From positions 41,168,001-41,232,000 of the forward strand of contig OZ038378.1 in NCBI GenBank assembly GCA_964036045.1: a stretch of DNA of 64,000 nt, written 5' to 3'. Under the pieces are notes generated by a model. It ran no database searches. It was not told the DNA's origin and saw only the letters and a list, made by a program, of their open reading frames with translations. Source of the DNA: Eutreptiella sp. 'Long Island Sound 2002' (lineage: Eukaryota > Protista > Euglenida). The translations under genes were made by a program, and so were the position numbers. Shown here in pieces: positions 1 to 60,433 of this stretch; the stretch's first letter is position 1, and the number at the start of each line of letters is the position of its first letter.

Positions 1-1986
1 GTCCGCAATACCAGACTCTAAATGCTCCACACTCCCTGACCCCTTGACATGTAGAAAATTGAACACCAGAAATCCAAAATGTTGAGTGCCATTCACCGTT
101 TCCTTCGCTTTGGTTTCACCAAAATCCATCGTCCAAAAAAGGCTCGGTTGCACTGGGTGTTCGTATTTCGGCATGGGGGGGGGGGGGGTGCAGCCTGTTG
201 TGCAGGGCGGGCTGTTTGAACGGCTGTGTGTTGGTGGTCGAGAGTAGGGACGGCAAGCCCAGCGTCCCAAGCAACGCAGATTCTATCTCAGGAGCACAAA
301 CATAGCATCCCGCAGCATGGGAACGAGACGGCAACAAGACAGAGGGGTATCAATTCCATGTGTGTATAGTACGTGCCCGGTCGTCTCGTAATTGGGGCGG
401 GTGTCGCACACTGTCTCTGCGTATGCATCCATCCGCCCATCTAAACACAGAGATCGTCCATGCGCCACTGTTTCAGAGCGGCACTTTGCCCAATGCCTCA
501 CAGATTTCGATGCCCAACACTGCTGCCCTGGGAGTTGTCGGCTGTGGGCGAGTGCGTGTGCGTGTGCATGCGTGTGTGCGTGTTGTACTGTGTGTAACAC
601 CGCGTGCCTCTGCATCTGAGGATAGCCACGCACCGCCGCAAGGGGGTGGTCAGCCTGCTCTGCACTCTGCACCAATCATTGGGACCTCGACATCATCTAC
701 AGCCCTGCGGCCATTCTATTTGTATGCCAGCATACCAAAAGGTCGCTTTCTCCGGGAGGACGAACTACTCGACGAACTGCTCATGCTGGACCACTCATTA
801 GAGGAGGAGGACACCGACGAAGAAGAGGACTCTGAACTCGAATCGTATCTTCCCCCAGTTCATCCCCAGGCCCACTTTTGGGGTTAATCCCCAGGTCATT
901 TTGGTTGAAGACCATCTGCCTTGCTCCATCTGTCAGAGAAAGGGGTCGTACAATATTTGTATGCGGCCTGACCAGGCAAATGCACTCAAGACCACCGCTT
1001 TGTTGCTCTGTTTGTTCGCTTGACGCCGCGCGCGACTTCTTTCCTGGCCAGATGGAAATTGCCTGGTCCTGTGCTGTACCGATGCTCCGAGTTTGTATGC
1101 ATTTTGCCGGTGTGCAGAGTCGCTGGGTGTCCACCCCCGTTTGTTGTCTGTCAGCGGCTGGTGGTGGGATCGGACACCGGCAGCAGTCTGTGTTTCGTTG
1201 GGTTTTGGCATGTTGCCGATGTCCTGCCTGTGCAAGGAAGGCGCCCGAGAATTGTCTCAGGGGAGGCACAAATGCACAATAGCACTAAACAACGGCACGG
1301 CCCTCAGAAGTATATACATATAGTATATATGAGAAGCAGTGGAAGGAAGAACATTGTACAGTTTTTCTGCATGTCGTGCCCTGATATTGGCCCGTGAACT
1401 ACCTGCTGACTCCCGTCCGATCCCAGTCATTTGTGGTGCATGACGTTTGTCGAGGCTGTCCCCTCTGCACAGCCCTCCGATTGTGTTGCATTGGGGCTTT
1501 CCATTCCGCAGTGCAGTGTCAGTGCCGCACTGATATTCTGAGGTCACCGCTCCAACACCTTGTAGCATGCGGTTAGGGCTGATTGGTGGATTTGGTACCC
1601 ACCCCGGACTTGATTTGTGTATGTGGTTAGGGCGACTTGGTGGATGTGATACCCCCCCCGAAGTGGGTTTGTGATAGTTCCTGGTGGTGTGAATGGCTTC
1701 TCACTTTTTTTTGGTCCTCAGGCTCTCCGCGGCCCTTGTGCAGGCATGGGCTCGTCTCAGCACAGGGATCCCCAGTGGACCGCACTTTCGTAGCCCATTG
1801 TTGTTTGCGGTGCCGAATCCGAAGGTAGAGGGGGAACGTTAGCACGCCGGACGCGCGCCGGGCATCTTTTTGGACCCGTGCCCCTCTAGTGGCCTTTTAG
1901 GGGGTGCACTAAGGGGGCGCACTTAGCACAGTGCAACTATTTGGGCGCCTGGCTGTACTAGAGACCCACACTTTGAGATACTAGGA

Positions 1987-2394
1987 GCATCATGGTGACC
2001 CCTAGCGTAGGTTTTGACTTCTGATTTTGTCTCCTTTGTTGGGGACCCCCGAGCATAGCATTTCCGCCCTCTTTTGGGCCCCAACCTTCCGGTGCTATTG
2101 AGGAAACCGGGACAATCTTTGAATCCACGCTTTGTTGCGTGGTGCATCATGGTGACCCCCGGCGTAGGTTTTGACTTCTGATTTTGTTCCCTTTGTTGGG
2201 GACCCCCGAGAATGCAGGGGTGACGTAGCATTTCCGCCCTCTTTTGGGCCCCAACCTTTCGGTGCTATTGAGGAAACCGGGACAATCTTTGAATCCACGC
2301 TTTGTTGCGTGGTGCATCATGGTGACCCCCGGCGTAGGTTTTGACTTCTGATTTTGTTCCCTTTGTTGGGGATCCCCGAGAATGCAAGGGTGAC
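1987..2394. repeat. About 2.5 tandem copies of a 170-bp unit derived from family B internal sequence, inside A1
   Basis: GCATCATGGTGACCCC starts at 1987, 2144 and 2314. Sequence from about 1900 to 2060 is homologous to about 59930-60080 and 58110-58200. Confidence 0.9.
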
Positions 2395-2949
2395 GGGACA
2401 TCAGCAGATGTTTTGATTTGGGATGGGTATGGACCTTCTCGTACCCGAGGTTATTTCTTTGATTTTGAAGTTGGGGGCCATGATGGTGCTTATAAAGGCC
2501 GGATTCATGTCATTGTGCCATTCATTGGAAGAAAGAATGGCACTTTGACAGCCCGCCAACAATGTTACAATGATGTCCATGGGTGTTACAGGGCACGCAT
2601 TGAGCAGCTGTTTGCTCGGTTGTGGCATTGGGGTTTGGTTAGGAACATCTAGCGTGGCGGCCCCAATGAGTTGCACCAGTCAGTCCGCATTTTGTTGCAT
2701 TTCACTCAGTTTTGCGTCCGGAGGCAAGTCCGTCACCCCCCCTACGGACCATGGGAGCATGTGCCGCCTCAGGTTTGGACTGACCAAAGCAACTCGGCCG
2801 CCACGCAAGATGAGGCAGAGGATGAGGCGGAAATGTGTGTTTTGTGTTGCCAAAGGCGCTCCACCGTCGCAGTTTGTGATGAGTGTAAGGAGCACTATTG
2901 TAATGAATGTATTGACACCCACACTTGTGGGACCAATGTTGTTTGTTAA
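2395..2949 (+). pseudogene. C-terminal fragment of DDE_Tnp_4-like transposase with B-box-like zinc finger
   Basis: GTSADVLIWD...HDGAY...PFIGRKNGTLTARQQCYNDVHGCYRARIEQLFARLWHW fits the D-x2-Y and R-x2-IE-x2-F catalytic motifs of DDE_Tnp_4. The TAG at 2650-2652 is TGG in copy A3. The frame continues through PYGPWEHVP and an acidic linker to C-x2-C-x9-C-x2-C-x4-C-x2-C-x3-H-x-C (2836-2928). Confidence 0.8.
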
Positions 2950-5102
2950 TTACACTACAAATGACAGTTGGAGTGGTTGAAATCACAGATCCTGCTTTAT
3001 TTTGCAACGTGCTTTGTAGGGAAGGTGTGCAGTGCAACGTGGTCTACTTGGGGGGCTTCTCCATGGGAGGGTAAATCTGGGGCTGAAGTCGGGATAGCTA
3101 ATAGAAAAGTAGCGCGCCGGGCGCGCGCCGGGCAAACATTCCCCCAGAAAGGAAAGTGATGAGCATCATCTGAGCGCGACCTCAGTCGACGACTGGCAGA
3201 TGCCAGAGATTTGAACTCGTGGCCCCACACAGAACTGTGGTAAAACGAAGCGTCATTGGCTCGTCTGAGACGTGTTTTCTGCAGGAGTTGCACGAATTTC
3301 TCCACCAACATGAAAGTGCGAGGAGGGAGGGCTGTGTGTGTGACCGAGCGATGAGAGGCCCGAAGGGCCGCCGTAACCGACGTGGTTTTCTCCATCGACG
3401 ACGCGTCAAGGCGCTGCGTCTCACAGCGGTCCTCTTCTGCTTCTCTGCAGTGGCTCACAAAGTGCAGAATGGTTCCCATCCCAAGGCAGGGCGGGCCCAC
3501 CATGAACGTGCAGCGCTTGCGTACGTTGGGGCCACCCCCGCCCTGGTCTGGTGCCCTGCTTCCATTGTGGGCCACGGAATGTGGCTGAAACCACATCCAC
3601 CCCTACCTCCTGCTGGCCCCTGTCCAAACATGTCTCATGTATTTTTCCATAGCATTCCCCCCCATCTAATGGGGACAACCTGTCCGTCCTTTGGAGCGGG
3701 AGGCGGCTGGTGGTGGACCAATGGCAGTTGATGTCTTCGTTGATTGACAGCAGGTGGTGTCCAGCCGATGGCGTTATGGCGAATGGCGGCTCAATGGCTA
3801 GCGGCTGAAATTTGACTGTTGATCGGTGCACCAGCTGCTCTCCTGGCACACACGACGGACCATGCACAGACCACACGTGCCGTCTTTTTTCGGAGATGCT
3901 CCAGCTCCACGGGCTCTTTACCATGCGCGGGTGTGGTGTCGGCTCGAAGCCCTGCAAAAAAAAGCGCTCAAAAGGGTGTGCCCTCGTCTCCGCTTGTCTC
4001 AGGGCCGGAAAAGACCGAGTAGGTCAACCACCCCCACACCCATACATTGCACACCCAAAGCCTCATCAAGGTCCTGTCCTAACAAGGCGCCCCCATGTTT
4101 CTGCTTTGCTCCTTTTGGGCATTTTTTGGAACCATCATTTTGGCGGTTCATACCAACAGGCCCCTGGAAGGGTCAATATTGGTGTCAAAGTGTTGGTGTA
4201 GTTGTAATTCCATGTGCTCTTGTATTCTGGGGTTTATGCTGGCGTGTTGGACAACCTGTTGTAGTGATGAAGAATTCTCTTTTCACTGCCGGACTGCCTG
4301 TCACATACCAGCGGTACACGAACAATGAGTTTGTGCCTGCTCAACTTTTGGGTCCCTTTACACAAGTTGAGCAGTACAGTCGCATTGTGTAGGAGTGCAA
4401 TGGTCACGAACAAGAGCATGATGCCCCCCTGGATCGTGTTACCTTCCCCCATACAGTCACCTTCACCCTCAGACCCTCAGCCCCTAAGCCAGCTCCTAAG
4501 CCAGCCCCAACAGGCAAGCATGTCCAGCTCTTCAAGATGAGGCGCAAGGTTGGCAAGGGGTTCTATTTCGTGCCTTTCAATCAGTATGCAGGCAACAGAG
4601 TGGTACCTGAGTTGTGCACATGAAGAAAACCTGCTTTGTATTGTCATGTTTTGAGGGGTAGGGTTAGCTTATGTCTGCAACATGTGTTCCGTGGTGCTGT
4701 GAAATAACATGGGTTTGTCCGAACGGCGCGACCCCGCGTTTGTGCACTTGAGTCCCTGTACCAGAACCTGGCCCGTGTTAGGACAGGGGGGATACATGTA
4801 CTGGCTTCTTGCACGTTGCACACTGTGCACTCTGCACATTGCAGCTCTCAGTGCCCCGCTATGCTCTATGGACTCTGCACATTTCACTGTCTTTGAACAA
4901 ATAGGATCACAATTGTGTTCGTGCTGCATGGGCACATCACGTGCTCCCCATTGTGCCACCATGCTATGCACCCTGTGTTTCCGCACTTTTGGATGTTTTT
5001 TGGAACCATCGTTTGCGGTTCCAACCCAAACACAGCGACCCCGTGTTTCGGCACTTTTGCCCTTTGAACCAGAAGCCGGCCCGTGTTAGGAGGGGGGGGG
5101 TT

Positions 5103-5190: not shown

Positions 5191-6096
5191 CGTCCCAAAA
5201 AGAGCAATTTCCTTCGTGCTCAAACACACCGACCACCACAGTTACGCTACACGGCACGTACCACGGAACACATGCCAATTTAATATTTTGTCTTGCAGAC
5301 GTAAGCCAACCCTACCCCTCACAACATGACAATGCAAAGCAACAGGCCAGCATACACCCCAGAACACAAGAGGCCCCGGGATGCAGCTGTCTGCAGGTGC
5401 GTTTTAGAGAAATTTTGCAAAAAATTTCGATAATTTCGATTTTTTTAAGAAGTTTCTGAACACCTTGAAAACCACACCCCTCCCACCCCGGTTATGTATA
5501 TGATGACACCCGACACCCGCGGTGCCATCTCTGCGAATGTACTTCAATGTACGACGTGTCAGCCACATCCCAAGATGGGGTTGTTGTAGCCGAAGGTACA
5601 GTGGACCATCAGTCCCAATGGGTAGGTGGCTGAGTGCCGCCGACAGCTGCAGCAGAAAAAGCAAAAGCCACATGGGCCGATTTCCGCCCCTTTCTCCTGG
5701 GCACAAACATATTCCAAGCCCATGTCCAAAGACTGGTTTGTGCTGAGGTCGCCGCGTCATCAAGGTTGCTGTGCTTAGGGATCGATCCAGGCCTGTGGTG
5801 ACCACCTGAGTTTTGATCGTGGCTCTGTCTTTGTCCTAACCCCCCCCCCCCCCCCGCCCCGGCCGCGCAAAAAACAACTGGTGACTGTGAATGACCGTGT
5901 ATGGTGGGCTGGCCTTTCTCAACCTGAACGTTGTGACTTGGGACTGTGGACAGGTGTTTCCAAGAAAAAGAAAGAAGAACGCTACTGTCAGATTGGAGAA
6001 ATCTCTGTTTGGAGAGGTGGCCCGGCGGCCCAGCCCCATCCTGCCTCTATGCTAACCCTTGTATGCACAGCGTGCAGGACCTTAATCGGCTAGTTT

Positions 6097-6683
6097 GGGA
6101 ATGCCATGCACGCAGTGCGCACACAATGCGAAGTTTTGGATGTCGGCGAGTACTCAGACCCCACTTTTGGCCCCTTTTGACAAGTTTTTGGTTACAATAC
6201 TAGGGTGTTCCTAGTATGGAACCAAAAATATTTTTGCCCATTTTCAACCATTTTTTCTCATTTTGCATCCCCCACATTGAACTCTCCCCACCATGGGGAC
6301 CCCGAGAAGGCAGGGGTGATGTGATGACCAACCACTTAGCCTTGTAAGGTACAACTATGCATGCAAGATGCACACATGTTCGAGTGGCAAATGCCACACT
6401 CGGATATATCACCAGGACAGTGGCCACACAATTGGCAACAAATACCATCATCATTTTCCTCCTCCTCAAAGGTGGCCTCCTCCTCTGCCCACACAGACTC
6501 AGGCACATGAGGCCAAGGTCCATAGGGTTGATACGGACATTGGAGCACCAATTTGAACGTAGTTTCATTTGTTATCCTGTGGGCTTTGCTGCTTCGCCGT
6601 GCTATCAGATAGGTGACAGGTAATCTTGGGTGAGTATCCCGGCATTTGCGTGCGCAATATGCACGCAGTGCAACAACTTGGCC
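6097..6683 (-). mobile_element. Family C non-autonomous TIR element, copy C1, with transposase C-terminus on the minus strand
   Basis: Ends are GGGAATGCCATGCACGCAGTGC and GCAGTGCAACAACTTGGCC, with TSD TTT/TTT. Minus ORF 6336..6551 (PYQPYGPWPHVPESVW-acidic-CQLCGHCPGDISECGICHSNMCASCMHSC) is homologous to the family A C-terminus. Confidence 0.8.
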
Positions 6684-7300: not shown

Positions 7301-10300
7301 ACCGCGGCCCTGCTTGCGCAAGGGGGGGGCGGGGTACATAGACATGGCTGTCTGGGCCTGGATGATGCGCTGCTTTTGCTGATTGTGTGTCCGCACAGTG
7401 TGCACAAACAAGGCCCTTGTCAGGACAACAGGAGGCATTGTTTCTGTCATTTTCAGTGCTTTTACCATCGTTCTCGCAAGGCGGCTGGGGAAGCTAGAAG
7501 GGGCATATATCCTGTAATATGTTGGGACCTGGGCGCATCTTGGACAATGGGGGAGCCAAACAAGTCGGGGTGTAGTCATGCACAGTGCGCAGAGGAGGAA
7601 TAGGGAGGCTACCTGATTGAGCCCATGCCCAGTGCTTGCGCTGTGCCGTGGCATCCCCACACCGCCACATCACTGCAGGTCCCTTCACGCAAGTATGGGA
7701 ATCAACACCCAAAATGTATGTACGAATCGATCCACGGAAGGGGGGGGTGAGCATTCGGCATTGGCATGGCACACTGGGCTCTGATGGGCCTTTCTGGCGA
7801 GCCTGTGCTTGTGTGTGCACATGACAGCTGTGGACCCTGCAGGCAGTGCACACCCTTCCAGGTTATGTGTGTGCGCGTGTGCGGACTGTCTATGTGTTTG
7901 AACAGTCCCTTTGTGTGGGGGCCAGTGCTCCAGGCCCACGTCGCCATGCCTCCCCCACCAAAGCACGGACTCAGATCAAAACTGTTGCGGCATCTCAGAA
8001 ATCCCTGCCAGTGACCGTTTCTCAGCCCCGGTTGGGCCTGCATAGGGACGTTGTTGTGGTGCTGTAAGTCTTAGTTCTATCTTGATGTTTGGTGCCTTGC
8101 ACCACATCATCTGCCCCCCTGCATCCCCCCGCTCAATCACTACAGAAAACGGAGGATTGACTGTATCCTGATTCCCACCTCTTTCCAACCCCTCATCACT
8201 GAATGCTATGAATGTTTTCTCTCGCAAGCTGTGATCACAAAGCAGTCCTACTCAGTCTGCGCACCAGCACTGGTGGCGACCGCTGGCGCAAACGGTGCCC
8301 GACATCCTTTCTCACATGTGCGGACACAATTTCGAGTATAAGTGGTAAACTCAGTGACATTCCGACCACGGGCTTTGCACGCTGGGCTGACGCTATGTCC
8401 CACATCCGATCAGAGGCTTTCATCTATTAAAGGAATCATAAAAACACAGGCTCATCTGCGCTTCAGGCGCTGCTACGTGAGTCCTCCACTCACACATTGG
8501 CCCCTGGGGCAAAAGAGTTCTTGGCCTCCAAAGGACACGCCACCACTGACCCGGTGGTAGCTTATCGCATACTGGCAGCGCTAGCAGCACGGGAGGACTC
8601 AGATCGCACGGGCCAGTTGGTTCTGGACAAGCTCAAGGCAGTGATTGCGGACCCGCGCCTCCCAACCTTGATGTGTCAAACATGAGGTCTGGAGGCTCAT
8701 TCGCCAGCTACAATTTAAAAGGAAGCTCCACACTTTGCGCACGAAACAGGGATTAGTCTTGCCGGATGTAGATTTCATTGCCCAAGAAATACACCTTTTT
8801 TTGGTTAGGCACCCTCACCTCCAGGGGACTTCCGTCCCCACAAGTAAAGCCCTTTTTCCACGGCAAGCCCCTGGCTGACATGGCTAAGCTGCTCATTAAG
8901 CCCTGTCACCAAACCTAGTACATGCGGCCCTGGAGTCCCTCAACTCCACCTCGTCCCTGGGAATAGATGGCTTCACAGGGGCCATCTACAAAGCTTTTGC
9001 TTTGCTTGCCTTTGCATTTCCTTCCCCTAATGCATGACATCTTCAAAGGTCTGCTTACCACCCCTCGGGTCCCAGACTCCACGGGCCTAGTGCTTTTGAA
9101 CCCCATCCCCAAAGCCCTGGGACTGGCCGGGGTGGAGGACCTTCGGGTGTGAGACATGGTTGCCCATTGTCTCCTTCCATTTTTGCGATGCTTATCTCCC
9201 CCGTGACGCATAAGCTGACCTCTATTTCTACGCACATCCAGGAACCCCTCTATGCAGATGATCTGCTTGGTTGTCGACACAGGGGTCCCAGACCAAGCGG
9301 TGTACCTTTTTCTTATCGCTTGGGCAGACATACGGCCATTCTCTAAATTCTCGTGATTAGATGTCAATTGCAAAAACCAGCGATCTTACCCAAAAGGTCT
9401 TTGGGCGGAAGCTCACAAAGTCCACCTCCTTGCCACGCACTCCCCATTCGGACTTCTTACGAATACCTAGGAATTGAGTTCATATCCGCACCGCGGATGA
9501 ATCCTACTCTCGCGCCTTACAAAAAGCCATGGGACGAGCTTTTATACCTGGGCACACTCCCTGCTGGAGAGAGTCCAGGTGCTAAAACTCTGGATCCCCC
9601 CCCCTACGGGTGTAGTCGGGCTGAAAGTGTTGATGGCGGGGGCATTCGGTCAATCAACACCGACCCTTGATCCCAGTAGTATTTTTTTGCTAGGTGACCC
9701 GTCAGCAATCTGGAGCTCTAGAGACAGCTTCTGCAGCAATTGGACACATCACACAGGGTGGCGGAGTGGATCGAAGCCCCCTCTCAAATAGGCATACAAG
9801 GTAATGAAGTACCCGGCTCGCATCGTCTTCCCGGGCACCGGGTTAGTCAATTCACCTAAAACAATTTACCATGTCGCGCTCAAACTGATTTCTTGCAGGG
9901 TTACAACGGATATCCTCTCCCACACCTGTGATAAAGGCGGATACAGACTCGCCCCGCTAGAGGCATTCCTCTATTGGCAGCACTCGACCGCCTTTGTGAA
10001 CCATGTTAACAGCCCACTCCATGTGCCTAAAATATTGAGCCACAGCTTCCAGCTCTTTGCCAAGGAACTCGGCTTGTGTGTCAATTCTACCACTCCGCAT
10101 ACATTTCAAATGGGCTCCGATGTTATTTGGAATAAAATGTTGTTTCTGGGCTGGTCTACGCGGGCCTTTTCTTTGGTTAAACAGTGCTTGTGCTTCGCGG
10201 AACCAGATCTCCTAGCCTATCACACCGTGATTTGGCACTCAACATTTTTTCGCAATCAACACAACCAAAGCTATCTTGCCCCTCGGCTAATTAAAATGGG

Positions 10301-10401: not shown

Positions 10402-11358
10402 GGGGAAGTTCTTGCACTACGTGCATACTACGCACACAGAGGCTGGGATGCTCACCCAAGTAATAGGGGGAACGTTAGCGCGCCGGGCATCTTTTGTGAC
10501 CCGTGCCCTACCGCTGGACTGTTGCTGGTGATATGTTGGGCAACATTATATGGATTTGCCCCTTAGCCCCCGGGACATCAGCAGATGTTTTGATTTGGGA
10601 TGGGTATGGACCTTCTCGTACCCGAGGTGATTTCTTTGATTTTGAAGTTGGGGGCCATGATGGTGCTTATAAAGGCCGGATTCATGTCATTTTGCCTCTC
10701 ATTGGAAGAAAGAATTGCACTTTGACAGCCCGCCAACAATGTTACAATGATGTGCACGGGTGGTATAGGGCACGCATTGAGCAGCTGTTTGCTCGGTTGT
10801 GGCACGCAAGATGAGGCAGAGGATGAGGTAGAAATGTGTGTGTTGTGTTGCCAGAAGCGCTCCACGGTCGCGGTTTGTGATGAGTGTAAGGAGCACTATT
10901 GTACTGAATGTATTGACACCCACACTTGTGGCACCAATGTTGTTTGTTAAGTACAATACAGATGATAGTTGGAGTTGTTGAATTCACAGATATTGCTTTA
11001 TTATGCAACGTGCTTTGTAGGGAAGGTGTGCAGTGCAACGTGGTCTACTTGGAGGGCTTCTCCATAAGAGGGTAAATCTAGGGCTGAAGTCGGGATAGCT
11101 AATAGAAAAGTAGCGCGCCGGGCGCGCGCCGGGCAAACATTCCCCCATACGGTTTGTGTTGACCATATTATTTCCTTCGAATCTATTTCAGAACAATGAA
11201 CAATCCAAGAACTTTTGATTGTTTACGGAAGAAGTTTTCCTTTATAAGAAACCAAGGGCACAGAATCAATGTTTTACCACCAAAACGTAGCTAGGGTGTG
11301 AGTAATTGCCGACATCCAAACATTTGCGCTGCGTGCGCACTGCGTGCACGGCATTCCC
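10402..11358. mobile_element. Family C element copy C2 (inverted relative to C1 and C3), host of A2
   Basis: Left end GGGGAAGTTCTTGCACTACGTGCA is the reverse complement of the C1/C3 right end. Right end is GCACTGCGTGCACGGCATTCCC. TSD TCA/TAA has one mismatch. Confidence 0.75.
10466..11146 (+). mobile_element. Family A element copy A2 (681 bp) with internally deleted transposase fragment
   Basis: Same TIRs as A1, with perfect TSD ATA (10463-10465 and 11147-11149). Encodes GNIIWICPLAPGTSADVLIWD...HDGAY...YRARIEQLF plus the B-box-like tail (10747..10950). Confidence 0.9.
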
Positions 11359-11905: not shown

Positions 11906-12320
11906 GTTTTCACGGACGGGTACTAAGTAGGGGAAGAGGGGAGGGGCATGCTAGCAAGATATGGCATTTACCGCGATGCATGTGTTAGCATTCTAGCCTT
12001 TGTACCGGTTGAATATCGACAAACACATAACACAGCAAAATTGCTCGCCGTCTATCGCGTTGTTGAGATCTTCACGACGGGAGAGGTAGCAATTTGCACG
12101 GAGTCACAATATGTCATCCTAGGACCCTCAAAGGCAGCCGTGCACTGCAAAATCCGGGGTGAGGGAGGCTCGTCTGGCCCCGTCTCCAATGTACCACCTT
12201 GGGAACCGGTGCTTGCCGAGTTGGGAAGGCCCGGACGTGCGGTAAACGTGGTTAGAGTCCTCTCCCATGTCACGGTAGAAGGTTACAATGAAGGAGACCG
12301 CGTGGCGGAACAAGGCAGGC
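11906..12320 (+). pseudogene. RNase H1 domain remnant (cellular type), probably from a retroelement
   Basis: VFTDG (11906-11920), then after a frameshift RYGIY...QTHNTAKLLAV...VAICTESQYVI...PVSNVPPW...VLSHV...GYNEGDRVA. All RNase HI motifs are in order, though several catalytic residues are decayed. Confidence 0.85.
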
Positions 12321-12489
12321 ATATGCACCCACGCTACCCTCGGCCGCACACCCCCCTTTCCAATTGTATCCACGGTCAGCGCCTAAGGGCCCCAAACACC
12401 GGAGGATTTCTTCACCCGACTTCTCACCGCTCCCGCCGACAACTACTTTTCTCACTAGATGCACCACACATACAACTGGCCTTGTCAGA

Positions 12490-13175
12490 GGGTATGCCGT
12501 GCACGCATTGCGCACATAGTGCGAAGTTTTGGAGGTCAGCAAATACTCGGACCCTCCTTTTGGCCCCTTTTGACAAGCTCTTCGTTGCATACCGGGGTTT
12601 GTTTAACTTCCTATGCATTTGGCATGTGGCACATTTGAATTGTCACCCTTTGTCACCATTTTTACCCATTTTCCATCCCCCATATTGAACTCTCCTCACT
12701 ATGGAGACCCCGAAAAGGCACGGGTGATGTTGCCAAACATAGCTCGCGGACCTTGAGGAGTTGGTGGTACGGTCTTCATCCCCACCACATCACTGTCCTC
12801 GCTCGCCATCAACATGTGTGCGCGTCCACGCTGAGAATCTCCACCGCCCTCCCCTTCACCCTATTCTCGGTCCCCATCACCCAAGAGACCACGGACAACG
12901 TGCTCCCCGCACTCCGAGTCAAGGGACACCTCATCCCCGCTTCCACTAGTGGAACCATGGGCACCGAAACACTCGAAGCAAGCAGACTTTACAAGACTGA
13001 GTGGTTTCTTCATAGGGACAGTGGAGTACCATTGTTGAAGGCAGTTTCGTTGTTCTCACGTGGGCTTTACTGCTTCGGTGTGCAACCAGTCAGGTGGTGG
13101 GTATTCTTGGGTGAGTATCCTGGCCTCTGCGTGCGCAGTATGCACGCTGTGCCCACACAATGCAACAACTTGGCT
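12490..13175. mobile_element. Family C element copy C3 with foreign internal segment
   Basis: Ends are GGGTATGCCGTGCACGC and TGCAACAACTTGGCT, with perfect TSD AGA (12487-12489 and 13176-13178). Excision restores the frame LALSE|AQEALLAIHL. Confidence 0.82.
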
Positions 13176-13617
13176 AGAGGCACAAGAAGCGCTCTTAGCA
13201 ATTCATCTATCGCATGTGTTACAATTTTTTAGACAACCAAGGAACCTCACACGCCGACAAGAACGCTTCAAGGGCCAACAACACGGAATCCTATGGCATC
13301 AACCGTGGTGTCGCCTACTCCACTGAGTGTAGCAGATAAATTTCGCCCCCCAAGTGCCTTTTGGCCCCACCCACATGAACCGTCATGACTATGTTTTGCT
13401 TGATTGGAACTAACCAGCCAGGGCCTAGGTCAAGCCGAAGGAGTGCCATGCGATGCGGCTAGGGAAGTGCGCATATGGTACCATTTAGCCGGGGCTCACC
13501 TCGACGACAAAGAATAGTGAATTGTGTTGCGATCGGTTTCATGACAGACGGATTCGGATTTACCACAAAAAAACAGACATATTGGCGTCAGTGGTCCCAT
13601 GGCTGTGCGTAACCATG

Positions 13618-13656
13618 TACATAGAATAGTGGAGCACCCCATCCAAGAAGGGGACA
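13618..13656. repeat. ~40-bp dispersed motif, copy 1 of 3
   Basis: TACATAG(A)ATAGTGGAGCACCCCA(A/T)CCAAGAAGGGG(A/G)CA also occurs at 26292-26330 and 55354-55395 with unrelated flanks. Confidence 0.85.
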
Positions 13657-21974: not shown

Positions 21975-24900
21975 GTCACCCTGGTGCCCGCTTGCTGAAC
22001 GGGTCCCAAGTCCACGAGCATGCTCAAGAGCACAGCCTCTGCGTGCTTGTAGAGCCCGCCAAGGCTGCGGTGCTAGCGGCCGTCAATTGCACCTACTGCC
22101 GGCCCTGCCCGCAGCTCGACGCCGGGCAGTCTTGGGCGACGCCTCCGCCTTCCTGCGCACGGCGGGGACCAGTGTCAAGGTCGTGGCTGGCGACCTCAAC
22201 AAGGCGCAGGGCCCGCGCGAGAGAGGGTGGCTCTCCAAGGCCTTGGGCTGGAAAGGCCCGCTACCCGAGTTTCGCGGTCCGTACCGGCCGGGCGACCCGA
22301 CGAATGTCTTCTGGCACGTGGTGCGCCCCCTCCGAGCGGGAGCTTGACTGGATCCTCATGGGACCGCATATCCCGTGCGTGCAAGCTTAAAAGGTCCTAC
22401 TGCCCGGTCTCAGCACCCGCCGGATGGTGCATTGCGACCTGGGGTTCGCGGAGCGCGTCTTCGCCGCAACGGACCATCACCCGGGGTACCCCGGTGAGCA
22501 TGAAGCCCACGGACTGCAGCGGAAGCGGGCCCAGTGTCGTGGGCAGAGTCCTTGGCGCAAACTGCAGCCGGCGGTGCACAGAACGAGGTAGTATACCTTC
22601 AGCTTTCCCATCTGCACCGAGCCGTAGGCTGGCGCGCACGTGACCGCGCAGATGCCCCATCAGCCAGGCAAGGCCCGAACCCGTGAGGGCGAAGTGGCGG
22701 CGGTCGTCGCTGCACGCAACCTCGGGAAGGAAGCCGTGGGGGGCGGCAGGCTGCCGCGGGACATAGGTCGCCGGGTCTGGCGCGCTAGGTCACCGGTTCT
22801 CGGGGTACATGCCCCGCGGACAGCGTGCCGGAGGTACTCCGTCCGTTTCTCCAAGAAGTACCCCACGCCCTGCTTGTCGCCCTGGACCCCAACATGGCAC
22901 AGTTTGTATGGGCCCGCCTGGCCGTACGGGGAGGCTACCCACACGTCGAGCCCGTCGTACAAGTTGTGAAGCCGGGGCGACAGAGACTCCTCAGGGACCT
23001 CGTGATCCCGGACCCCCGCTGCCGCGGGGTTTGGGTTGCACAAGGCATTCGCCTTATTCCAGTCGTCCAAGCAGACCGCTCCATGCTGGATTGCCGAGCC
23101 GGCCAACAGCCAACGGCAGGCTAGGGCCACGGTCCGGCATGCCAATTGCCGCCCATAGGCCAAGTGCTCCGGGGGCACACCGCACCTGAGCTCCCGGCGG
23201 GTCACCGGGCGCCCCTGCACGACGCCCGTCTCCAGCCGCCAGAGGTAGGGCTCCAGCATGACGGGCCGGCTGTTGCCCACCAGCCACGCTGGGAGCTTCT
23301 TGGCGAGGCAGAGGTGGAGGACGGCCGAGAGCAGGCGGCCGGGGCTCCGTCAAGCCAGGGCAGGTCGTCTGTGGGATCAGCCGGATGCACGGGGGCCTAG
23401 AGGCGCGAGAGGTTCAGGGGGAGGCCCGCGTGGCCGCAGTGAAGGTCCGGGGCCTGGCGGAAAAGCTCCTCGTGGAAGGCCTCCGGCGTGCACGGGAAGC
23501 AGACGCGGTCGGGGCTGACCTCAGTGAGGAGGCGGAACTTGGGCGGCCGGAGGCGCAACGCGCGCCCTGTTTGGGACGTTAGGGCCACCCATTGCAGCTT
23601 GGCCGTCTCCATGCGGAGGAGGGCACCGTACGCCGCGTCTTGGCGCTCCAGCCACAAAGCTTGCACCATGTCCGCTGTCGCTGACCCGACGCCCGCATCA
23701 AGTTCCTGGGCCGCCCGCAGGACGTGACGATCCGGGTGGTGCCAAGAGTCCTACTAGGAGGGCAAGAGGCCTTCCAAGGTGGCCCACACCGCCTGGACTG
23801 CTCCATCCGGGTTCACGCGGGCGTGGGCTAACCACCACAGGGCCAGCGAGGCTGCCGCCGCCGCGGGCGCTTGCTGCTCCGGGCTGAGGCGACCACCTGC
23901 GCTCACAGATCGCCAAGGCGGAGACAAGCCTGGCGAAAATAGAGTGTGTGCTTTAACGCTTACGCCCAGCCCACGTGCTCGTCCTTCTCATCGTCCTCGC
24001 GTACGTAATCTCAGGTGCGGACTATGTCTACGAGGCCATGTAGCCGTGCCCGACGCGCCTTCGCCGCACACAGAGGGTAGTGGATAGGGTCTTGACTAGG
24101 GCGCCGCGGGTGCCACGGAACGTGCCCAGGGCCTTACCGTGGATGCAAGTTGCAGGCGGAGGCTTCAGCTTCCCCCATTTGTCCCACCGGATGCGCCTCC
24201 GGCATGTTCTGGGGTTTCTCGGGGCCATGGATTCGCGCAGCGTACTGGTTCAGGAGAACGTCCGCGCCCTCCGCCACCGAGACCAACGGACGGGCACAGA
24301 TGGCCCGGACCAGGGTCGCCTACTCCACACCATGGCGCAAAGCCACTTGAAGGTGCACGTTCTCCCGGCGGCAACTGCGCAGCCAGCGGCTGTGTTCATC
24401 CACGTGTACAGACCATACGAGTCTGGGAGGGGGGGGGGCAATGGAGGTCACGCGGGACAGCGACACCCTGGGATGGGGCGCGCTCGTGGGGGACACCACG
24501 AGGGTCTTTGCATCCGTCGTCGCAGGGGTTCACACGGTGGCTGCCAGCCCATGGGCCGCTCAGTGGGCGGGCAAGCTGAAGGCGTGGCGCCTTGCCGAGA
24601 CGTTGGGTGTAGTCCCCACGGCGGTCCAGTATGTAGGGGCAGAATGCACCTCCGCCACCCTCGGCGGTGACGGGGGTGTCCCCTCCTAATCCCCCGGCTG
24701 GACAGGTTCACGGTCACCTTCGCCGAGGCCACGGGGCGCAGACGGCTCGACCTGTACGTGCCACTTCAGCACAACACCTAGTGGTCAGGCCTCCTGTCGG
24801 ACCTCCAAGGGGGCTCACGACTTGACGGCGGTGGGCATGGGCATGGCGCGCGAGTGCATGTACCCGCTGCCGAGCGCACTGGACGGGACGGCCCAGCTAG

Positions 24901-26230
24901 TCTTATCACGCCACCTGCAAAAGGCGGTCCGGCGGGAGACGGACCGCCTCTACGCCCAGCTGGCCCCGTCCGTAACCTTCGTCCGGGGTGCAGCAGGGGA
25001 CGACCAGGCTTGTAGGCCTAGGCTCAGCATCCGGCCGACAGCAAAGTGCTCACGGAGAGCCTCAGGTTTGCGGTGTGGGTGCGCATGGCGCCCTCAACCC
25101 ACACCTCGGCGCACGCGGAATTCCAGTGCGCGTACTGCTCGCAGCCGTGCAAGGGGTGGGGGGATCAGATGGTCCGCCCTTGCCCTGTATTGCTCGCAGC
25201 GTCCTTGACCGGTTTCCGGGCCATGTGCGCCCTGCTACGGTCCCGAAGTTATGCCGTATGATGACGCAACTCCCTGGGGGCCACGGTCTACAACAAAGCA
25301 GGCCACACCACGCATTGGAGGCTGGTGCGGGACGAGGACGTGGTTGTACACTCCGAGAGCGCCGCCCGGGACATGGCCATCACGTGGTCGATGACGGTGT
25401 GGGCCAGGGCCCCACCGCCCTGGCCTGCCCGCGAGCGCGCAGCCCTTATGGCGGGGTACGTGCGGGCAGTGGCGCACTCGCTGGTGCTTCCACTGCCCGC
25501 ATGGTGGTCGTGCCTCATCGCCGGCGGGAGCGGGTTGCTGCTGGGCCTGTTCTCGCCCTTGGCTGACGCTGGCACACTGCTACGCTATGCCATGGGAGAG
25601 TGCGCGTGCATAGCTGGGCCGCGCCCTGAGCTGGTGGGCCGCGCAATCCCCGTGTCCATATCGGACCCGGCGGAACGTGGGGTGTGCCCAAACGTGGTCC
25701 TCCGCGTGCGCGCCCGGCCGTCCTTGCATCGGGCCACCCCGGAGGTGGTTGTAGCCCCGCCCGCAACCTGCTGGGCGCTGCTCCCCGGCTTTACCATCCA
25801 GCCGCTCGTGGATGGGCCCTTGCTGGCTTTCCTTGCGGGCGCGGCGCCAGCCGGCTTCCTTGCAGCATCAGTACCCTTCCTCCCCTTAGAGAGGACGCCT
25901 CCGGGGGACCTGCTGGATGAGGGCGATGGTCCCGAGCCCCAAGCCGGTAACGCTGACTGCGGCGTGGTGCTCAACGTTGACGAGGACGACGAGTATGTCC
26001 TCGACTAGTCCCCCCCCCCCCCCCACCTACCCCCCCCCCTACCCCGCCCCCCCTCCAGCTCCGACCTGGCGTCGGGGGGGGGGGGGGCGTCGGCTCAACC
26101 CGCGGCCGGACTGCCCCCGCGCCTAGGGCAGGGATCCCTAGCGCTGCGCGCAGCCCCAGGGCAACCCAGCCCCCGGTCACGCAGGACAGTGCTGCCTCGG
26201 TAGGCCATGCCCTCGCCCCCCCCCCCCCCC
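21975..26230 (+). mobile_element. APE-type LINE remnant: APE - (inverted linker+RT) - RNase H-like - Zn finger - C-terminal ORF
   Basis: On plus: VAGDLN, RELDWIL and GLSTRRMV (APE). On minus 22475-23669: GNSRPVML, LDDWNKA, GVQGDKQG and VACSDD (RT). On plus again: IKFLG, GGGFSFPHL, GWGALVGD...AAQWAGKLKAWRLAETLG (RVT_3-like), CAYCSQPC, and 227-aa ORF 25325..26008. Confidence 0.85.
22475..23669 (-). other. 1195-bp internal inversion within the LINE
   Basis: Flanked by inverted 5-bp microhomology CGGAC (22470-22474) / GTCCG (23670-23674). Re-inversion gives the in-frame join ERVFAATD|MVQALWLERQ. Confidence 0.85.
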
Positions 26231-28399
26231 CGACCTTCGACCCCTCACACACATGCAGGGGACACTGTCACTGTGGCTGGTCACGGCTATTTACATAGAT
26301 AGTGGAGCACCCCAACCAAGAAGGGGACACATGGAGCCTGTGTGAATGAACTGCACTTGCACGCACTAACGTGATGAACTTATGGATGTACGACAGGCGG
26401 TGGTGGACGTCTGTACGTTTCAGCAAACCACCTTTATCTCCCCCCCCCCCCCCCGGGCCTCAGCGTGCCCCACACGCCGCACCTCCTCTCTCCCTTGACC
26501 GGCGTGCCGCACCTCGCCGCGGCCCCCGGCCGTGCGCTTGCTCCTCGGGCTGGGGTAGCCGGCGCCACGGCAGGCCCCCACGCAGCCCGCAGCACCGGCG
26601 CACCTAAGTGGCCATGGGCTCGCCCCCTGTGGCTAGCGGGGCGCCCGCCGTACGCTGGCGCCCTGCCCACACCACTGCGCGGCCCTCCTTGACCTCCCCG
26701 ACGCACACAGCGGGCCCAGTCTCAGCGGGCAGAGGAGCGCACCATCGGCCCCACCGCAGGCCGGCGGCAGCGCCGGCGCGAGCATAGTTGATTGTAGCAT
26801 CCGTTTCGCAGCATTTCGTCAACCCCGTGCCCGCTTTGTTTTGCCCGCGTAACGCGTGTCCGCCCTTGCTACCAATTGACGAGAACCGGGAGGTAGGGGC
26901 GACCCGCAGGGGCGGGAGGGGGCGACACGGGGGAAGGGTTCGAGCAGAGGGTGGCGTCCGGGAGCGGCGCCAAGGCGCAACATGCAACTACCATGTTGGC
27001 GAGGAGGGGAGACGCCCGCTCCAGACCCTCCCCCCCCGTCAGCAGGGAGGCCCCTCCCCTAGTTCTCGCTGAGCGCCGTCGCAGGCCCAGCTAACAGCCA
27101 CCCCTCACCGGGCCCAGGTGCACGGCCAGCTCCGAGAGATGTTCGGGGAAGGCGAGACCTCCGTCGTGGACCCGGTCATGCCTACATGCCCCCCCCCCTA
27201 GCAAGGCACAGGGACGCTAGGCACGCTCCGCAATGTGGGTACAACTTTGCACCATGTTACGGCTGTATATTGTTTAACCCCAGTACCGCGGCCTCCCGCC
27301 GCTATCCACGTACTAGACCGGCCGTCGCGAGTTGCAGCTGGTTTCCTGCAGCCGTCTTAGCACTTGGGAGCTGCACACACACCGCTCGATGGCGCGGTGC
27401 GACCCGGCGCCACCCCTACATCTTTGGCTCACCCATGTGAGCCAAGCGCTGCCCCACCCCCGCCTCCCGCGCATAGAGCAGTCCCTCGCGAGCGTCGCCT
27501 GTGCGCCACACGCCCTCTGTGAGCTGACCCTAGCCTCCTCAGCTTGGAGGACGTCCTCATCGGGTGCTTTCTCCATTGGACGGCTACCAGAGCGGCCTTG
27601 AGATGTCGGCCCCTCGGTGCGTTCCCCAGGGCTTGACAGTGTCGGGGCAAGCGCTCCAGGAGGCCCTCGGCTAACGGTATGACGTGGCAGCCCCGCTCTC
27701 GTGGTCCCCCCACCTCCACTGGAGGAATGGCATGTAGCCCGCTCTGCTGGCGCGACACGCCCCTCGCCACGCCCCCGGACCTACATGCGGCAGCCGGCGC
27801 GGCGTTGGCCTTGATCCCGAGGGTATTTGCGGTGTGGTATGCGGTGTTGCCAGCCCCAAGGGTGCCCCCGCAACCCCCACAGCACCAGTCCCCCCGCGCA
27901 GGGCACGACGCCACAGCGCGGGCGTGGCTCGCAGCCCGCGAGCTTGTGCGGGCACGGCGGTAGCGCCGTAGGGTGCAGGTCGCTTTTCCTGCACCTTGAC
28001 CCTGGTGTGCGGGCATTCGGCGGCCGTCCACCGAGGCTAATGTGACCCTCCCCCTCCCTCCCCTTGCCCCAACCCCCCGCCACCCATTGCCCCCATTGCA
28101 TGCATGGCCGGCCAATATGCAGAGGCATCGGGACAACCATCGAGCGTCCCTCAGGCGTCTTGTGAGCCTCAACATCGGCCCTCAAATCAAAAGAATGAAA
28201 TCCCCAACCGCCCCTCCCGCAGCCCCCACCCCCCCTCGTACCCCCTCCTAGACCCCCTCCCCCCATTGCCCCTCCCTGAACCCCCTCTAATGCCCCCCTC
28301 GCCCCCCCTTGGGGGGCCTACGACGAATAGTTACATAAGGGGGTAGTCGGCGTCCACAAACGAGGTGTCGCCCCCCACCCCCTCCGTGGGTGAAGTCCG

Positions 28400-54735: not shown

Positions 54736-55887
54736 GGGGGAATGTTAGCGCCCTGGGCATCTTTTTGGGCCCGTTTTCCACCCATGACCTGTTCTCACCA
54801 CACCAGGGCCCCCGAGACACCACAGGCCATGTAGCCACTTCTGGTTCCTTTTGTTCGACCTTCCAGTGCTCTTGAGGTTGATTGGCCCATGTTCTTCATC
54901 CCCGTATTGGAGACCCCTTGGTTTGGGGTTATGGAGCCATTTCACTTTTCCCCAATGTGGCAGGGGTAATGTAGCCATTCCTCTTTTTCCGGATCATTTG
55001 GCCTGGCCATTCATTGGCAGAAAGAATGGCACTTTGACAGCCTGGCAGCAATCCTATAATGATGTACATTGGTGGTACGGGAGGCGTATTGCGCAGCGGT
55101 CTTGTGGCATTGGAGTTTGGTTAGGAACATCTGGCATGGTGCTCCTGATGTGTTGCACCAATTGGTCCATATTTTGTTGCATGTTGCATTTTGTCCGTTA
55201 CCCCCCTTCCGGACCATGGGACCACCGTTTTTCATGCACCATCTAGCTCAGCAACACACAGGTATTGATCTTTAGTGGTTCGCCGTCCACAGGTTATATA
55301 ACAAATGCAGCTGCCACTGGCACCGCTGATTGAAACCTTGTACCTACTTGTTGTACATAGAATAGTGGAGCACCCCAACCAAGAAGGGGGCACATGCATT
55401 TGTGAGAGAACCTCTGGACTAATGGCTGAAAGTGTCTATGGCGGGGACATTCAGTCGATCAGCACCGACCATTGATCCCCCATGGGACCATGCCCTGCCT
55501 CAGGTTTGTAATACAAATAACTCAGCCGCCATGCAAGATAAGGGAGAGGATGAGGCAGAGGTGTGTGCATTGTGTTGCCAAGGGTGCTTCATGAGATTGT
55601 GGTATGTGCCACGAACATTGTTGTTTTGAATGCATTGAGTCTCACAGTTGTGGGGATAACACTATTGATTAGCAACATGACACATCACTGTTTATTAGCA
55701 ACATGATCACTGGTGTTATGTGGAGTTCGCAATTTTGCGCCTTCTGCAATGTGCTTCGTAGAGAAGGATTACAATTCATTCTACTGTGCTTGAGGGGCCT
55801 TCTCTGGGGCAGGGTAAAACTGGGGTTAAAGTCGGGGTTGTCAATACAAAAGTAGCATGCCAGGTGCGCGCCGCCAAACATTCTCCC
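54736..55887 (+). mobile_element. Older family A copy A3 with a 255-bp insertion
   Basis: Ends GGGGGAATGTTAGCG and CAAACATTCTCCC, with flanks CTA/CTC. Encodes PFIGRKNGTLTAWQQSYNDVH and VRNIWHG. Insert 55225-55479 is flanked by CCATGGGACCA. Confidence 0.82.
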
Positions 55888-58350: not shown

Positions 58351-59905
58351 TGTCCAGATTGTTTTCTCCCCATCATACGGACCCCGAGCAACCACAACTG
58401 ATGTCGGACCTGAGGATCATGATCAAGACCAAGGGACAATCCAACCAGGCCGGTGGTGAGCCAAACAAAATGAACCATCAAACAAACCAAACCAAACAAC
58501 AGCAGGCACGTGCTGACCTAGCCCCCATGGATGCCTGGTAGAGCACACTATCACAAAGCTCAACCACTTGGCCCCCATTGTCGGGCCTTTGTGGAACAAT
58601 TATCCCCTTCCCACAACTCTTGACAGAGCCCCCTCTCCACCCCAACCTAGGTGTCCTCCTTAGGGGAGCGCCTCTTTGCAGGTGCTTAAGGGACTGATGC
58701 AACAACGGCTTCAAACAAGAGGCTGGTTGAGACCAAGGTTTGGTCTTAGAGATTGGAATCTGCAGCCTATTCTGCTCTCAAAAGACATCACAGCGCACAA
58801 ATTGGCACCTCCATGTAGGGTTGAGAACCCACCGGCATAGGTGGAAGGATTTATTTTGTTTTTTACCACAACTCGGTTTCCTATTAGTGTATTGGGGGGG
58901 TCATTGCCATGTTTGCGCTGGGTTGATTCTTTGCCATTTATCCAAGGGGTGACACTCACCCCATGTGGGGCACATTGGCCCCACCACTTGATGTCCTCTC
59001 CCTCTAAAACAGCATGGATCACGGATTTCATCCGGTCTATGGGATTCTTGGGCACAACAAGGGAGTTATTGGACATGGCTGCCTGTTGTTGTGTGATGGA
59101 CACCCTACGATTGGACACGGTAGTCAAGAAGTTCATTTGGAACGAGCCGCCCCCTCCACAGGGTGTTGCAAGCGACAGTGGTGTGTTGGAGCTGTTGCTT
59201 ACGCAAATGAAGTCGCACGGGCCGGCCCTCGAGGCTATGACCAAGAAACTGGCGCCGACTTAGCAAGCCAAGAATGGGGAGACATGATGGTGCCAAAGTC
59301 TTGCTAGGCTGAGTACGGATAGGTACTCAGAGCACCCGTGCCCCCCAAGGACGAACGCCCCTTTGAGCATGGAGGTGGTTCAAGCGAAAGGCACGCGGCG
59401 CTGGCGTGGCGGTGGCGGCGGTGGTGGGTGCGGTGATGAAGGTCCTGGGCGGCCGGCCGGGCCTCCATCGATTTACAATTTTAGCGTGACCCGTCCCCAA
59501 AGCAAGTAACCCTACCAACGGTGGCCCCCATGGCATGCACCATGGGTTCCCCAAACATCCTGATTTTTTTTTATTTGCTATGCTTGTTCGGGTAGTGTTC
59601 CAACCAAACGTTGTAAATGTGTTGCCATGGCGTTGAGGTGTAACCTTTTTTCAAGGCAACATTTTTCCTGTGAAACCCCAAATATGAATGTACGTATGGC
59701 CTCCCCGCTGGGCACGCTCATGGATTGCTTGGGCGCGATCCATAAGAGAGCAAGCGTGTACCCCATCCCCTTCGTGTTACTCATGTTTGCCAAGGGAAGG
59801 AGCATACATGAAACACACTCGGCACACGCGACACCGTGCTCTCCGGGTGGGAAGCCAGGTCCACCTCCCAAGGAGGCGATGGGACCACCCCTGCATTCGG
59901 TCTTA

Positions 59906-60433
59906 GGGGGAGACTTAAGCGCAGTGCGCGCGCAGTGCAACTATTTGGGCGCCTGGCCGTACTAGAGACCCATACTTTGAGATACTAGGGGCCGCTAGGG
60001 GCATCATGGTGACCCCTAGCGTCCGTTTTGACTTCTTATTTTGTCCCCCTTTGTTGTTGACCCCCGAGAATGCAGGGGTGGTAGACTTGAATGAAGTTCA
60101 GGTGGAATTGTTCGCGACTAAGGTGTAGCATATGATGCACCTCTACTGTTCGCGATACCTCAATAACGCTATCGCTTCCACTAGAGATCGATAGGGTTGT
60201 GCTATGCTAGCTCCCTTATCCCAACTTGCTAAGTTGTTGACCACGATCGCCCTTAAAGGAGCGAGAGTGGTACCGTCTACCCCAGTTTGCAACTTTCTTG
60301 AGCTGGGGCAGTTTGGGTCACCTAATTCTAAGGGTGTTTCCAAGGGATGTGCTTGGGGGCTCTTCGGAGGGAACATAGTCTAAAAGTAGCGCGCAGTGCG
60401 CGTGCAGTGCGCACGCAGTGCAAAGATTCCCCC
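59906..60433 (+). mobile_element. Family B element (528 bp) with captured methylase fragment
   Basis: Left end GGGGGAGACTTAAGCGCAGTGCGCGCGCAGTGC. Right end AAAAGTAGCGCGCAGTGC...GCAAAGATTCCCCC. TSD TTA/TTG. Confidence 0.8.
60084..60290 (+). pseudogene. Fragment of DIRS-type N6-adenine methyltransferase-like domain
   Basis: VELFATKV.HMMHLYCSRYLNNA(fs)YRFH*RSIGLCYAS(fs)PLSQLAKLLTTIALKGARVV follows the DLFA...YxS...W...YAxPP...KVLxKI...ARV pattern. The NPP motif is decayed. Confidence 0.6.

Follow-up and report, generated by a model that had tools for sequence, protein, structure and literature searches.

A single-ORF PIF/Harbinger-type transposon from a protist genome with a putative B-box1-like finger at the C-terminus of its transposase

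Harbinger-type transposons are the textbook case of cut-and-paste elements that need two proteins of their own. The stretch of 64,000 nucleotides analyzed here (the window) contains, at positions 2395-2949, a coding segment in which a transposase-like catalytic region runs into a PYGPW motif, an acidic stretch and a cluster of cysteines. This raises the question of whether there is a Harbinger-type lineage whose transposase ends in a finger of its own, and what such a finger would do. An earlier note made from the sequence alone had proposed a Harbinger/ISL2EU-type transposase clade ending in a B-box-like zinc finger. As a whole, the locus is probably best explained as a dead copy of an element of the PIF/Harbinger-ISL2EU-Spy (PHIS, IS5-like) superfamily, in which the finger would serve as a protein-protein interaction module and partly cover the job of the missing helper. 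A helper-free lineage with a conserved candidate protein-interaction finger would offer a natural test of the helper's purpose, be it end recognition, nuclear import or synapsis.

Dead copies in the window

What remains at 2395-2949 is 3′ coding sequence from a cut-and-paste DNA transposon of ~2 kb and very high copy number, here called family A; the copy concerned is dead and has lost internal parts. Searches of the window by tblastn and blastn located three family A copies, and a fragment of a second family (C1) lies between the first two. The features of copy 1 and the other copies are as follows.

1830-3145, forward strand: family A copy 1, 1316 bp from TIR to TIR, internally deleted (TIRs and flanks read)
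1830-1864, forward strand: 5′ TIR, with GGGGGAACGTT at its start, followed by GC-rich repeats of the GCGCGCCGGGC type
2056-2395, forward strand: 5′ subterminal tandem array of a 170-bp unit, two copies 98% alike (Tandem Repeats Finder)
2395-2949, forward strand: transposase pseudogene remnant, 3′ coding part, corresponding to about residues 131-324 of protein P0153
2740-2766, forward strand: PYGPWEHVP motif, of the form P-Y-G-P-W-x-H-x-P that is invariant in all 22 aligned tails
2779-2835, forward strand: acidic linker, 19 residues, net charge -7
2836-2928, forward strand: putative B-box1-like two-zinc finger, C-x2-C-x9-C-x2-C-x4-C-x2-C-x3-H-x-C
3111-3145, forward strand: 3′ TIR, ending AACATTCCCCC
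6338-6563, reverse strand: C1 fragment, ~200 bp, with only PYGPWPHVP, acidic linker and finger, translated over 6339-6551
10466-11146, forward strand: family A copy 2, 681 bp, TSD ATA, coding match 10509-10947, DNA identity to copy 1 94-96%
54736-55887, forward strand: family A copy 3, older and diverged (70-83% identity), coding match 54995-55666, ~80% identical, with frameshifts

Copy 1 is 97% identical to full-length elements at loci L001 and L003 and is flanked by the 3-bp TSD AGA (1827-1829 and 3146-3148), while its 5′ TIR is complementary to its 3′ end over ~35 nt, near-perfectly so in the first 11. The word depth of contigs from one DNA run over 1700-3300 was 19-36 outside copy 1 and 10^5 to 10^6 inside it, with ~10^4-fold steps in the bins 1808-1861 and 3104-3157, which hold its end positions 1830 and 3145. 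Since word depth does not equal copy number, our conclusion is confined to a copy number that is very high.

Translated on the forward strand, 2395-2949 reads HDGAY...RARIEQLF, LLHFTQFC, PYGPWEHVP, an acidic stretch and the Cys cluster before the natural stop at 2947-2949. The catalytic region described in the earlier note is present in that HDGAY...RARIEQLF is there, with the second catalytic Asp at 2482-2484 and the Glu at 2602-2604, but the frame is interrupted by a TAG at 2650-2652 and the first Asp is missing. Nearly all other copies have TGG (Trp) at this codon, and because position 2651 reads G in them, the TAG is a Trp-to-stop change private to copy 1. The first catalytic Asp is absent because ~490 bp of 5′ coding sequence were deleted at 2394/2395. 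Contigs from RNA libraries run leftwards past 2394 into intact coding sequence, so that the missing 5′ ORF was deleted in the copy 1 lineage alone.

Copy 2 is a non-autonomous deletion derivative in which both the 5′ ORF and the counterpart of 2628-2801 are missing, so that the end of its DDE part abuts the acidic linker and finger. Contigs from four runs contain the resulting 2625-to-2802 joint as well, which makes this derivative, too, a multi-copy form. Copy 3 has a degenerate TSD in its flanks (CTA/CTC) and an unrelated short repeat inserted at ~55352-55481.

The C1 fragment, which has no DDE core upstream and a two-codon deletion just before the His, is 85% identical at the DNA level to the 3′ end of an intact C1-family gene in locus L008, and the intact C1 relatives P0154, P0163 and P0204 carry a DDE core in the same ORF as the tail. 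It was this family in which the earlier note saw the same motif, linker and cysteine spacing; the spacing C-x2-C-x9-C-x2-C-x4-C-x2-C is indeed the same at ~33% identity, but what the window holds of C1 is only a ~200-bp fragment from which two codons have been lost.

The full-length element and its place among PHIS groups

Full-length elements were recovered at L003 3351-5387 (2037 bp) and L004 3573-5476 (1904 bp), which are 99% identical and each contain one long uninterrupted ORF that includes the tail, encoding P0292 (396 aa) and P0289 (422 aa), respectively. In the L003 element, the long ORF occupies 3845/4001-5191, and all other ORFs are short overlaps on either strand. The 650 bp 5′ of the ORF in full-length elements consist of the TIR and an array of the 170-bp tandem repeat, which lies 5′ of the ORF in L001, L003 and L004 as well as in the window, and whose copy number varies among elements from ~2 to 4.5 (window 2056-2395; L001 4131-4903; L003 3431-3853). 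This subterminal repeat could provide transposase binding sites or a promoter.

Comparison with full-length loci of a public assembly gave GGGGGAACGTTAGCGCGCCGGGC as the start of the element and GCCGGGCAAACATTCCCCC as its end, with both ends inverted over ~35 nt, and the TIR consensus starts GGGGGAAYGTT and ends AACRTTCCCCC. The TSDs of six complete copies, a small sample, were AGA and ATA (window copies 1 and 2) and TCT, TGA, TAT and AAA (L003, L004 and L008), all of a 3-bp, A/T-ended form; TAA was read only at two single-end flanks. The TIRs, TSDs and very high copy number rule out a domesticated host gene.

Full-length elements contain neither a second ORF of substance nor a Myb/SANT helper gene, and the neighboring ORFs of three loci (L005-L007) matched no Myb/SANT or other Pfam family. 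The 5′ TIR, used as an exact pattern, had 0 matches among metagenome contigs. Sequence of the element is present in estuary metagenomes and metatranscriptomes, and contigs from RNA libraries, which may contain DNA, suggest that it is transcribed. The near-identical copies point to a single ORF that may be competent for transposition. They also document, with full-length copies 99% identical, a major repeat family in a large, poorly known estuarine eukaryote genome; the genome piece that contains the window is longer than 140 Mb. A further family A copy, L003 6333-8013, lies 1 kb 3′ of the full-length one and lacks 304 bp including the linker and finger; its ORF of 465 codons has no ATG (its first codon is GTG) and ends right after PYGPWEHVPPQV.

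We searched a profile of the window tails against 1.84 billion representative proteins and obtained 196 matches at E<=0.001 and 81 at E<=1e-10, mostly short fragments, which puts the motif and spacing shared with C1 far beyond chance. The intact proteins, drawn from the longer matches and from follow-up searches, measure 320-656 aa and come from at least three ENA assemblies (ERZ25074135, ERZ27267618 and ERZ28668935). The homology searches retrieved solely this family, all of it ENA or JGI proteins, with no named outgroup. Tail and DDE core share one uninterrupted ORF in P0292, P0289, P0296, P0204, P0151, P0156 and P0085, and the fusion of the Cys tail to the core put forward in the earlier note thus holds for every intact copy, in seven or more proteins from three assemblies. 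A tail encoded by a separate exon or gene is ruled out by the uninterrupted ORF of the intact copies.

The earlier note had also recognized a DDE_Tnp_4-like core, and this was confirmed by the Pfam model, which scored 43.1 bits for P0154, 39.0 for P0204, 33.0 for P0085 and 30.9 for P0155 against a gathering threshold of 24.8. The window fragment, which extends over no more than positions 81-132 of the profile, accordingly scored less, at 21.5 bits (E 2e-4). D111, D186 and E224 (P0155 numbering) are invariant or nearly so and, from their position inside the DDE_Tnp_4 match, are the candidate catalytic residues.

The protein, of ~400 aa or more, is ordered as a basic N-terminus, a conserved helical region, the DDE_Tnp_4 core, PYGPWxH[VI]P, the linker and the finger. 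HTH_Tnp_4, the N-terminal helix-turn-helix of canonical PIF/Harbinger transposases, matched the helical region of P0155 weakly (E 0.13), and AF2 predicted helices with pLDDT 70-86 for the corresponding region of P0292; the AF2 model of full-length P0292, built with 85 family sequences, had a mean pLDDT of 46 and was unusable. An ESM Atlas feature search with the whole protein returned generic DDE_Tnp_4 clusters only.

The modules at the N-terminus vary: family A has basic PKPQ repeats, P0204 a long Ser-rich extension and P0296 a Tudor/SH3-like start. In the longest members of the P0155 subfamily, such as P0296 (469 aa; residues 1-60), this Tudor/SH3-like module (weak Pfam SH3_12 match, E 0.037) is joined in frame through a Pro/Ser/Lys-rich linker to the finger-bearing transposase; at L002 4448-4999, the module forms a separate adjacent ORF in another frame. 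P0204 (656 aa, C1-like, L005 425-2395) has a 330-residue N-terminal extension without a Pfam match, composed of a conserved basic start, Ser-rich low-complexity sequence and an NLS-like KRK stretch, and partly common to P0163 and P0211. The deleted copy L003 6554-7951 bears a comparable extension. Given these extensions, the ancestral transposase may have been much longer than 400 aa.

By its sequence features, the element belongs to the PHIS superfamily, because it combines a DDE_Tnp_4 match above threshold with TIRs and a 3-bp TSD. To this extent, the Harbinger/ISL2EU-type label of the earlier note stands, but nothing specific to ISL2EU was found. In ISL2EU elements, a THAP domain lies at the N-terminus of the transposase and a second ORF encodes a YqaJ exonuclease (PMC4482050), and Pfam scans of P0085, P0155, P0154, P0204 and the neighboring ORFs gave no THAP or YqaJ match. 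The DDE cores of ISL2EU and of our element are related, and in both the transposase is fused to an accessory domain that binds zinc or, in our case, is predicted to; there, however, the domain is an N-terminal THAP, whereas here it is a C-terminal finger of a different type.

With canonical PIF/Harbinger elements (PIF, Ping/Pong and Harbinger3_DR), the element has in common the DDE_Tnp_4 core, TIRs that start with G residues, a 3-bp A/T-rich TSD and abundant internally deleted (MITE-like) derivatives. On the other hand, canonical elements have two ORFs, while ours has one and lacks the Myb/SANT ORF1, and their TSD is TWA, while the TSDs here are not limited to that sequence (AGA, ATA, TCT, TGA, TAT and AAA; n=6). 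Mobilization of PIF/Harbinger elements needs two element-encoded proteins (PMC2836001; PMC4482050); of the six PHIS groups, four have a Myb/SANT ORF in their canonical members, and the YqaJ ORF is found in ISL2EU (PMC4482050). The mean consensus length of Pangu, NuwaI, NuwaII and another PHIS group is ~3.5-4.8 kb (PMC4482050), compared with ~2 kb for the element here.

Spy is the sole PHIS group with a single ORF and inserts into AAATTT without a TSD (PMC4482050). Our element resembles it in having a single transposase ORF and no helper gene but differs in its 3-bp TSDs, found at 6/6 complete copies, and in its finger, as no C-terminal finger is described for Spy. Pangu, NuwaI and NuwaII have a TSD of ANT, CWG or C|TNA|G together with a Myb/SANT ORF (PMC4482050); the six TSDs, taken as a set, disagree with these patterns, and our element has just one ORF. 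Compared by features rather than by phylogeny, the element appears to lack the defining features of each named PHIS subgroup considered, and we read it, on that feature comparison, as a new single-ORF PIF/Harbinger (PHIS) lineage.

The combination of PYGPWxHVP, acidic linker and B-box-like finger is unreported for PIF/Harbinger in PMC4482050 or in the literature searched. Searches of full-text papers turned up none in which a Harbinger/PHIS transposase has a C-terminal tail of this kind, which agrees with the novelty suggested in the earlier note. A transposase with PYGPWxH[VI]P, linker and finger adds a new domain architecture to transposon classification, and the element might yield a small, single-component gene-transfer vector, as Spy did.

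The C-terminal tail and its possible role

The tail alignment comprises 22 tails from at least nine subfamilies that are 33-97% identical to the tail of the window. Besides the PYGPW motif, all eight finger ligands are invariant in 22/22 tails, as C-x2-C-x7-11-C-x2-C-x4-C-x2-C-x3-H-x-C, and no other finger position is. The finger would bind two zinc ions in a cross-brace. The earlier note had listed six cysteines with a fixed spacing: that spacing is found in the window, but the pattern includes two more invariant ligands (H-x-C), and the loop between the second and third Cys ranges from 7 to 11 residues and differs between subfamilies. Linkers have 17-21 residues and a net charge of -3 to -10 across subfamilies; fingers have a net charge of -3 to +1.

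Subfamilies that share the eight invariant ligand columns are only 33-50% identical, and ligands are lost in visibly decayed copies (P0066, P0025 and P0050). Ligand invariance in the tails together with ligand loss in decayed copies is strong evidence that purifying selection acts on the two-zinc domain, as the earlier note had argued from two families. The same data bear on the idea that the Cys pattern is a chance or decayed pseudogene feature, or a captured host exon, without function in the transposase. The window copies are dead (stop codon, deletions and frameshifts) and the C1 piece is an isolated fragment, as this idea would have it; however, none of the eight ligand columns varies among the 22 sequences of at least nine subfamilies, the tail is in frame in intact ORFs of three assemblies, and it is the degenerate P0066, P0025 and P0050 that have lost ligands, which makes such an origin extremely improbable.

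By sequence, the finger resembles B-box1 domains most closely. When solved structures were searched by profile, MID1 B-box1 (2.2e-4) and TRIM28 B-box1 (4.5e-4) ranked first, followed by the MID1 tandem B-box (2.4e-3) and PML B-box1 (0.023), with FYVE-like, RING and PHD domains after these. In Pfam, sub-threshold matches were to ANCHR-like_BBOX in 10/22 tails (best E 4.4e-4), zf-B_box in 7/22 (best E 0.0081) and zf-HIT in 1/22, and no Pfam zinc-finger model reached threshold on the tails (cut-offs 27 bits for ANCHR-like_BBOX and 24.1 for zf-B_box). The tail profile also retrieved P0122, a protein with 13 B-boxes (E 1.2e-7), and hhalign of the tails with the B-box repeats of P0122 gave a probability of 90%.

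The AF2 model of the tail has a finger of two short strands and a helix at pLDDT ~80 and a linker below 50. Fold searches with this model (Foldseek against the PDB, VIA-align wide and ESM Atlas by shape) gave weak, mixed and non-discriminating matches to AN1, HIT, FYVE, MYND, RING, PHD and B-box folds, all at Z<4 or E>0.1, and the ESM Atlas feature search with the tail gave no usable match.

With TRIM-type B-box1 and the ANCHR-like B-box, the finger shares the spacing C-x2-C-x7-11-C-x2-C-x4-C-x2-C-x3-H. It fits the first seven ligands of the TRIM-type pattern (C-x2-C-x7-10-C-x2-C-x4-5-C-x2-C-x3-6-H-x2-8-H) but differs at the eighth, which in B-box1 is a His 2-8 residues past the first His and here is a Cys at H+2. 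Moreover, TRIM B-box1 domains sit in a RING/B-box/coiled-coil array, while this finger forms the C-terminus of a transposase. The B-box-like label of the earlier note is therefore apt in that B-box1 gives the best profile matches, but all of these lie below the Pfam thresholds. With its sub-threshold scores and its last ligand pair of H-x-C, we regard the finger as B-box1-like and outside the Pfam family proper, on evidence that is not decisive.

Judging from sequence, the finger most likely mediates protein-protein contacts. Finger and linker, which range from neutral to strongly acidic, would be a protein-protein interaction module and not a DNA binder: their acidic charge disfavors direct DNA binding and fits the protein-interaction role known for B-box1 domains. 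The likeliest role would be to let transposase subunits associate with one another in the paired-end complex, or to dock a host factor, and the finger would cover part of the job of the separate Myb-like ORF1 protein of canonical Harbinger elements. As a counterpoint, the long, unannotated N-terminal extensions of some members (P0204 and the Tudor/SH3-like start of P0296) could supply DNA binding or targeting that this reading partly ascribes to the tail.

We considered whether the finger could instead bind DNA at the element's own ends and so directly replace the end-binding Myb-like protein. There is a precedent in piggyBac, in which a C-terminal cross-brace zinc domain is established to bind subterminal repeats; as in our element, the domain lies at the C-terminus of a DDE transposase encoded by a single-ORF element, so that piggyBac offers a functional analogy. 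The element has no other recognizable DNA-binding ORF, and its TIRs and subterminal region hold repeated motifs that are candidate binding sites, namely the GC-rich GCGCGCCGGGC repeats in the TIRs and the 170-bp subterminal repeats. However, the piggyBac cysteine-rich domain, which belongs to an unrelated transposase superfamily and binds TIR DNA, is basic, whereas the finger here is acidic; the net charges of finger (-3 to +1) and linker (-3 to -10) are acidic in nearly all subfamilies, which is atypical for DNA binding. In addition, the sequence affinity of the finger is to B-box1, a protein-interaction domain, and the N-terminal helical region with its weak HTH_Tnp_4 match (E 0.13) is the more usual DNA-binding part of such transposases. 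We consider end binding by the finger unlikely.

A third view takes linker and finger as an appendage for regulation or host interaction, dispensable for catalysis or synapsis and serving, for instance, in autoinhibition, nuclear import, chromatin targeting or E3-ligase-like docking. This would agree with the position of the tail, which lies past the end of the DDE_Tnp_4 match and behind a flexible, low-confidence acidic stretch, and with the swapping of N-terminal accessory modules among subfamilies (P0296 and P0204), which suggests modular targeting domains. Yet it is the N-terminal modules that vary, whereas the finger stays invariant in all intact subfamilies, which speaks for a core rather than an accessory role; a dispensable appendage thus seems quite improbable.

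Returning to the finger as a protein-interaction module, we tentatively propose a more specific and possible, if doubtful, scheme: a single-protein PHIS lineage in which the PYGPW motif, acidic linker and B-box1-like finger replaced the Myb-like helper through self-assembly or recruitment of a host factor. If the helper has indeed been replaced, a giant protist genome would harbor a Harbinger-type system that is compact (~2 kb) and recently active, works with a single component and has multiplied to a very high copy number.

Other repeats and ORFs of the window

The window contains further repeats. The short repeat inserted into copy 3 belongs to a family that recurs at 13614-13656 and 26289-26333 of the window and at 5767-5895 and 6127-6261 of L008. 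A MITE-like short element of a related family lies at 59905-60433, with TTA|GGGGGAGACTTAAGCG at its start and ATTCCCCC|TTG at its end; it has no coding part, contains a 170-bp repeat unit at 59998-60080, and is 89.5% identical to L008 1579-1884 in its 3′ region.

Among the other long ORFs of the window, the Pfam scan gave nothing besides an RNase H match near threshold (24.7 vs 25.8 bits) in a 246-aa ORF at 11948-12685, which probably belongs to a retroelement; L002 has a comparable RNase_H ORF at 9378-10115. Rfam returned 0 matches, and a dinoflagellate spliced-leader pattern likewise had 0 when up to 3 mismatches were allowed. The region 22000-28000 has a G+C content of 67-69%, compared with ~52% elsewhere, and long overlapping ORFs on both strands, which are typical for GC-rich sequence.
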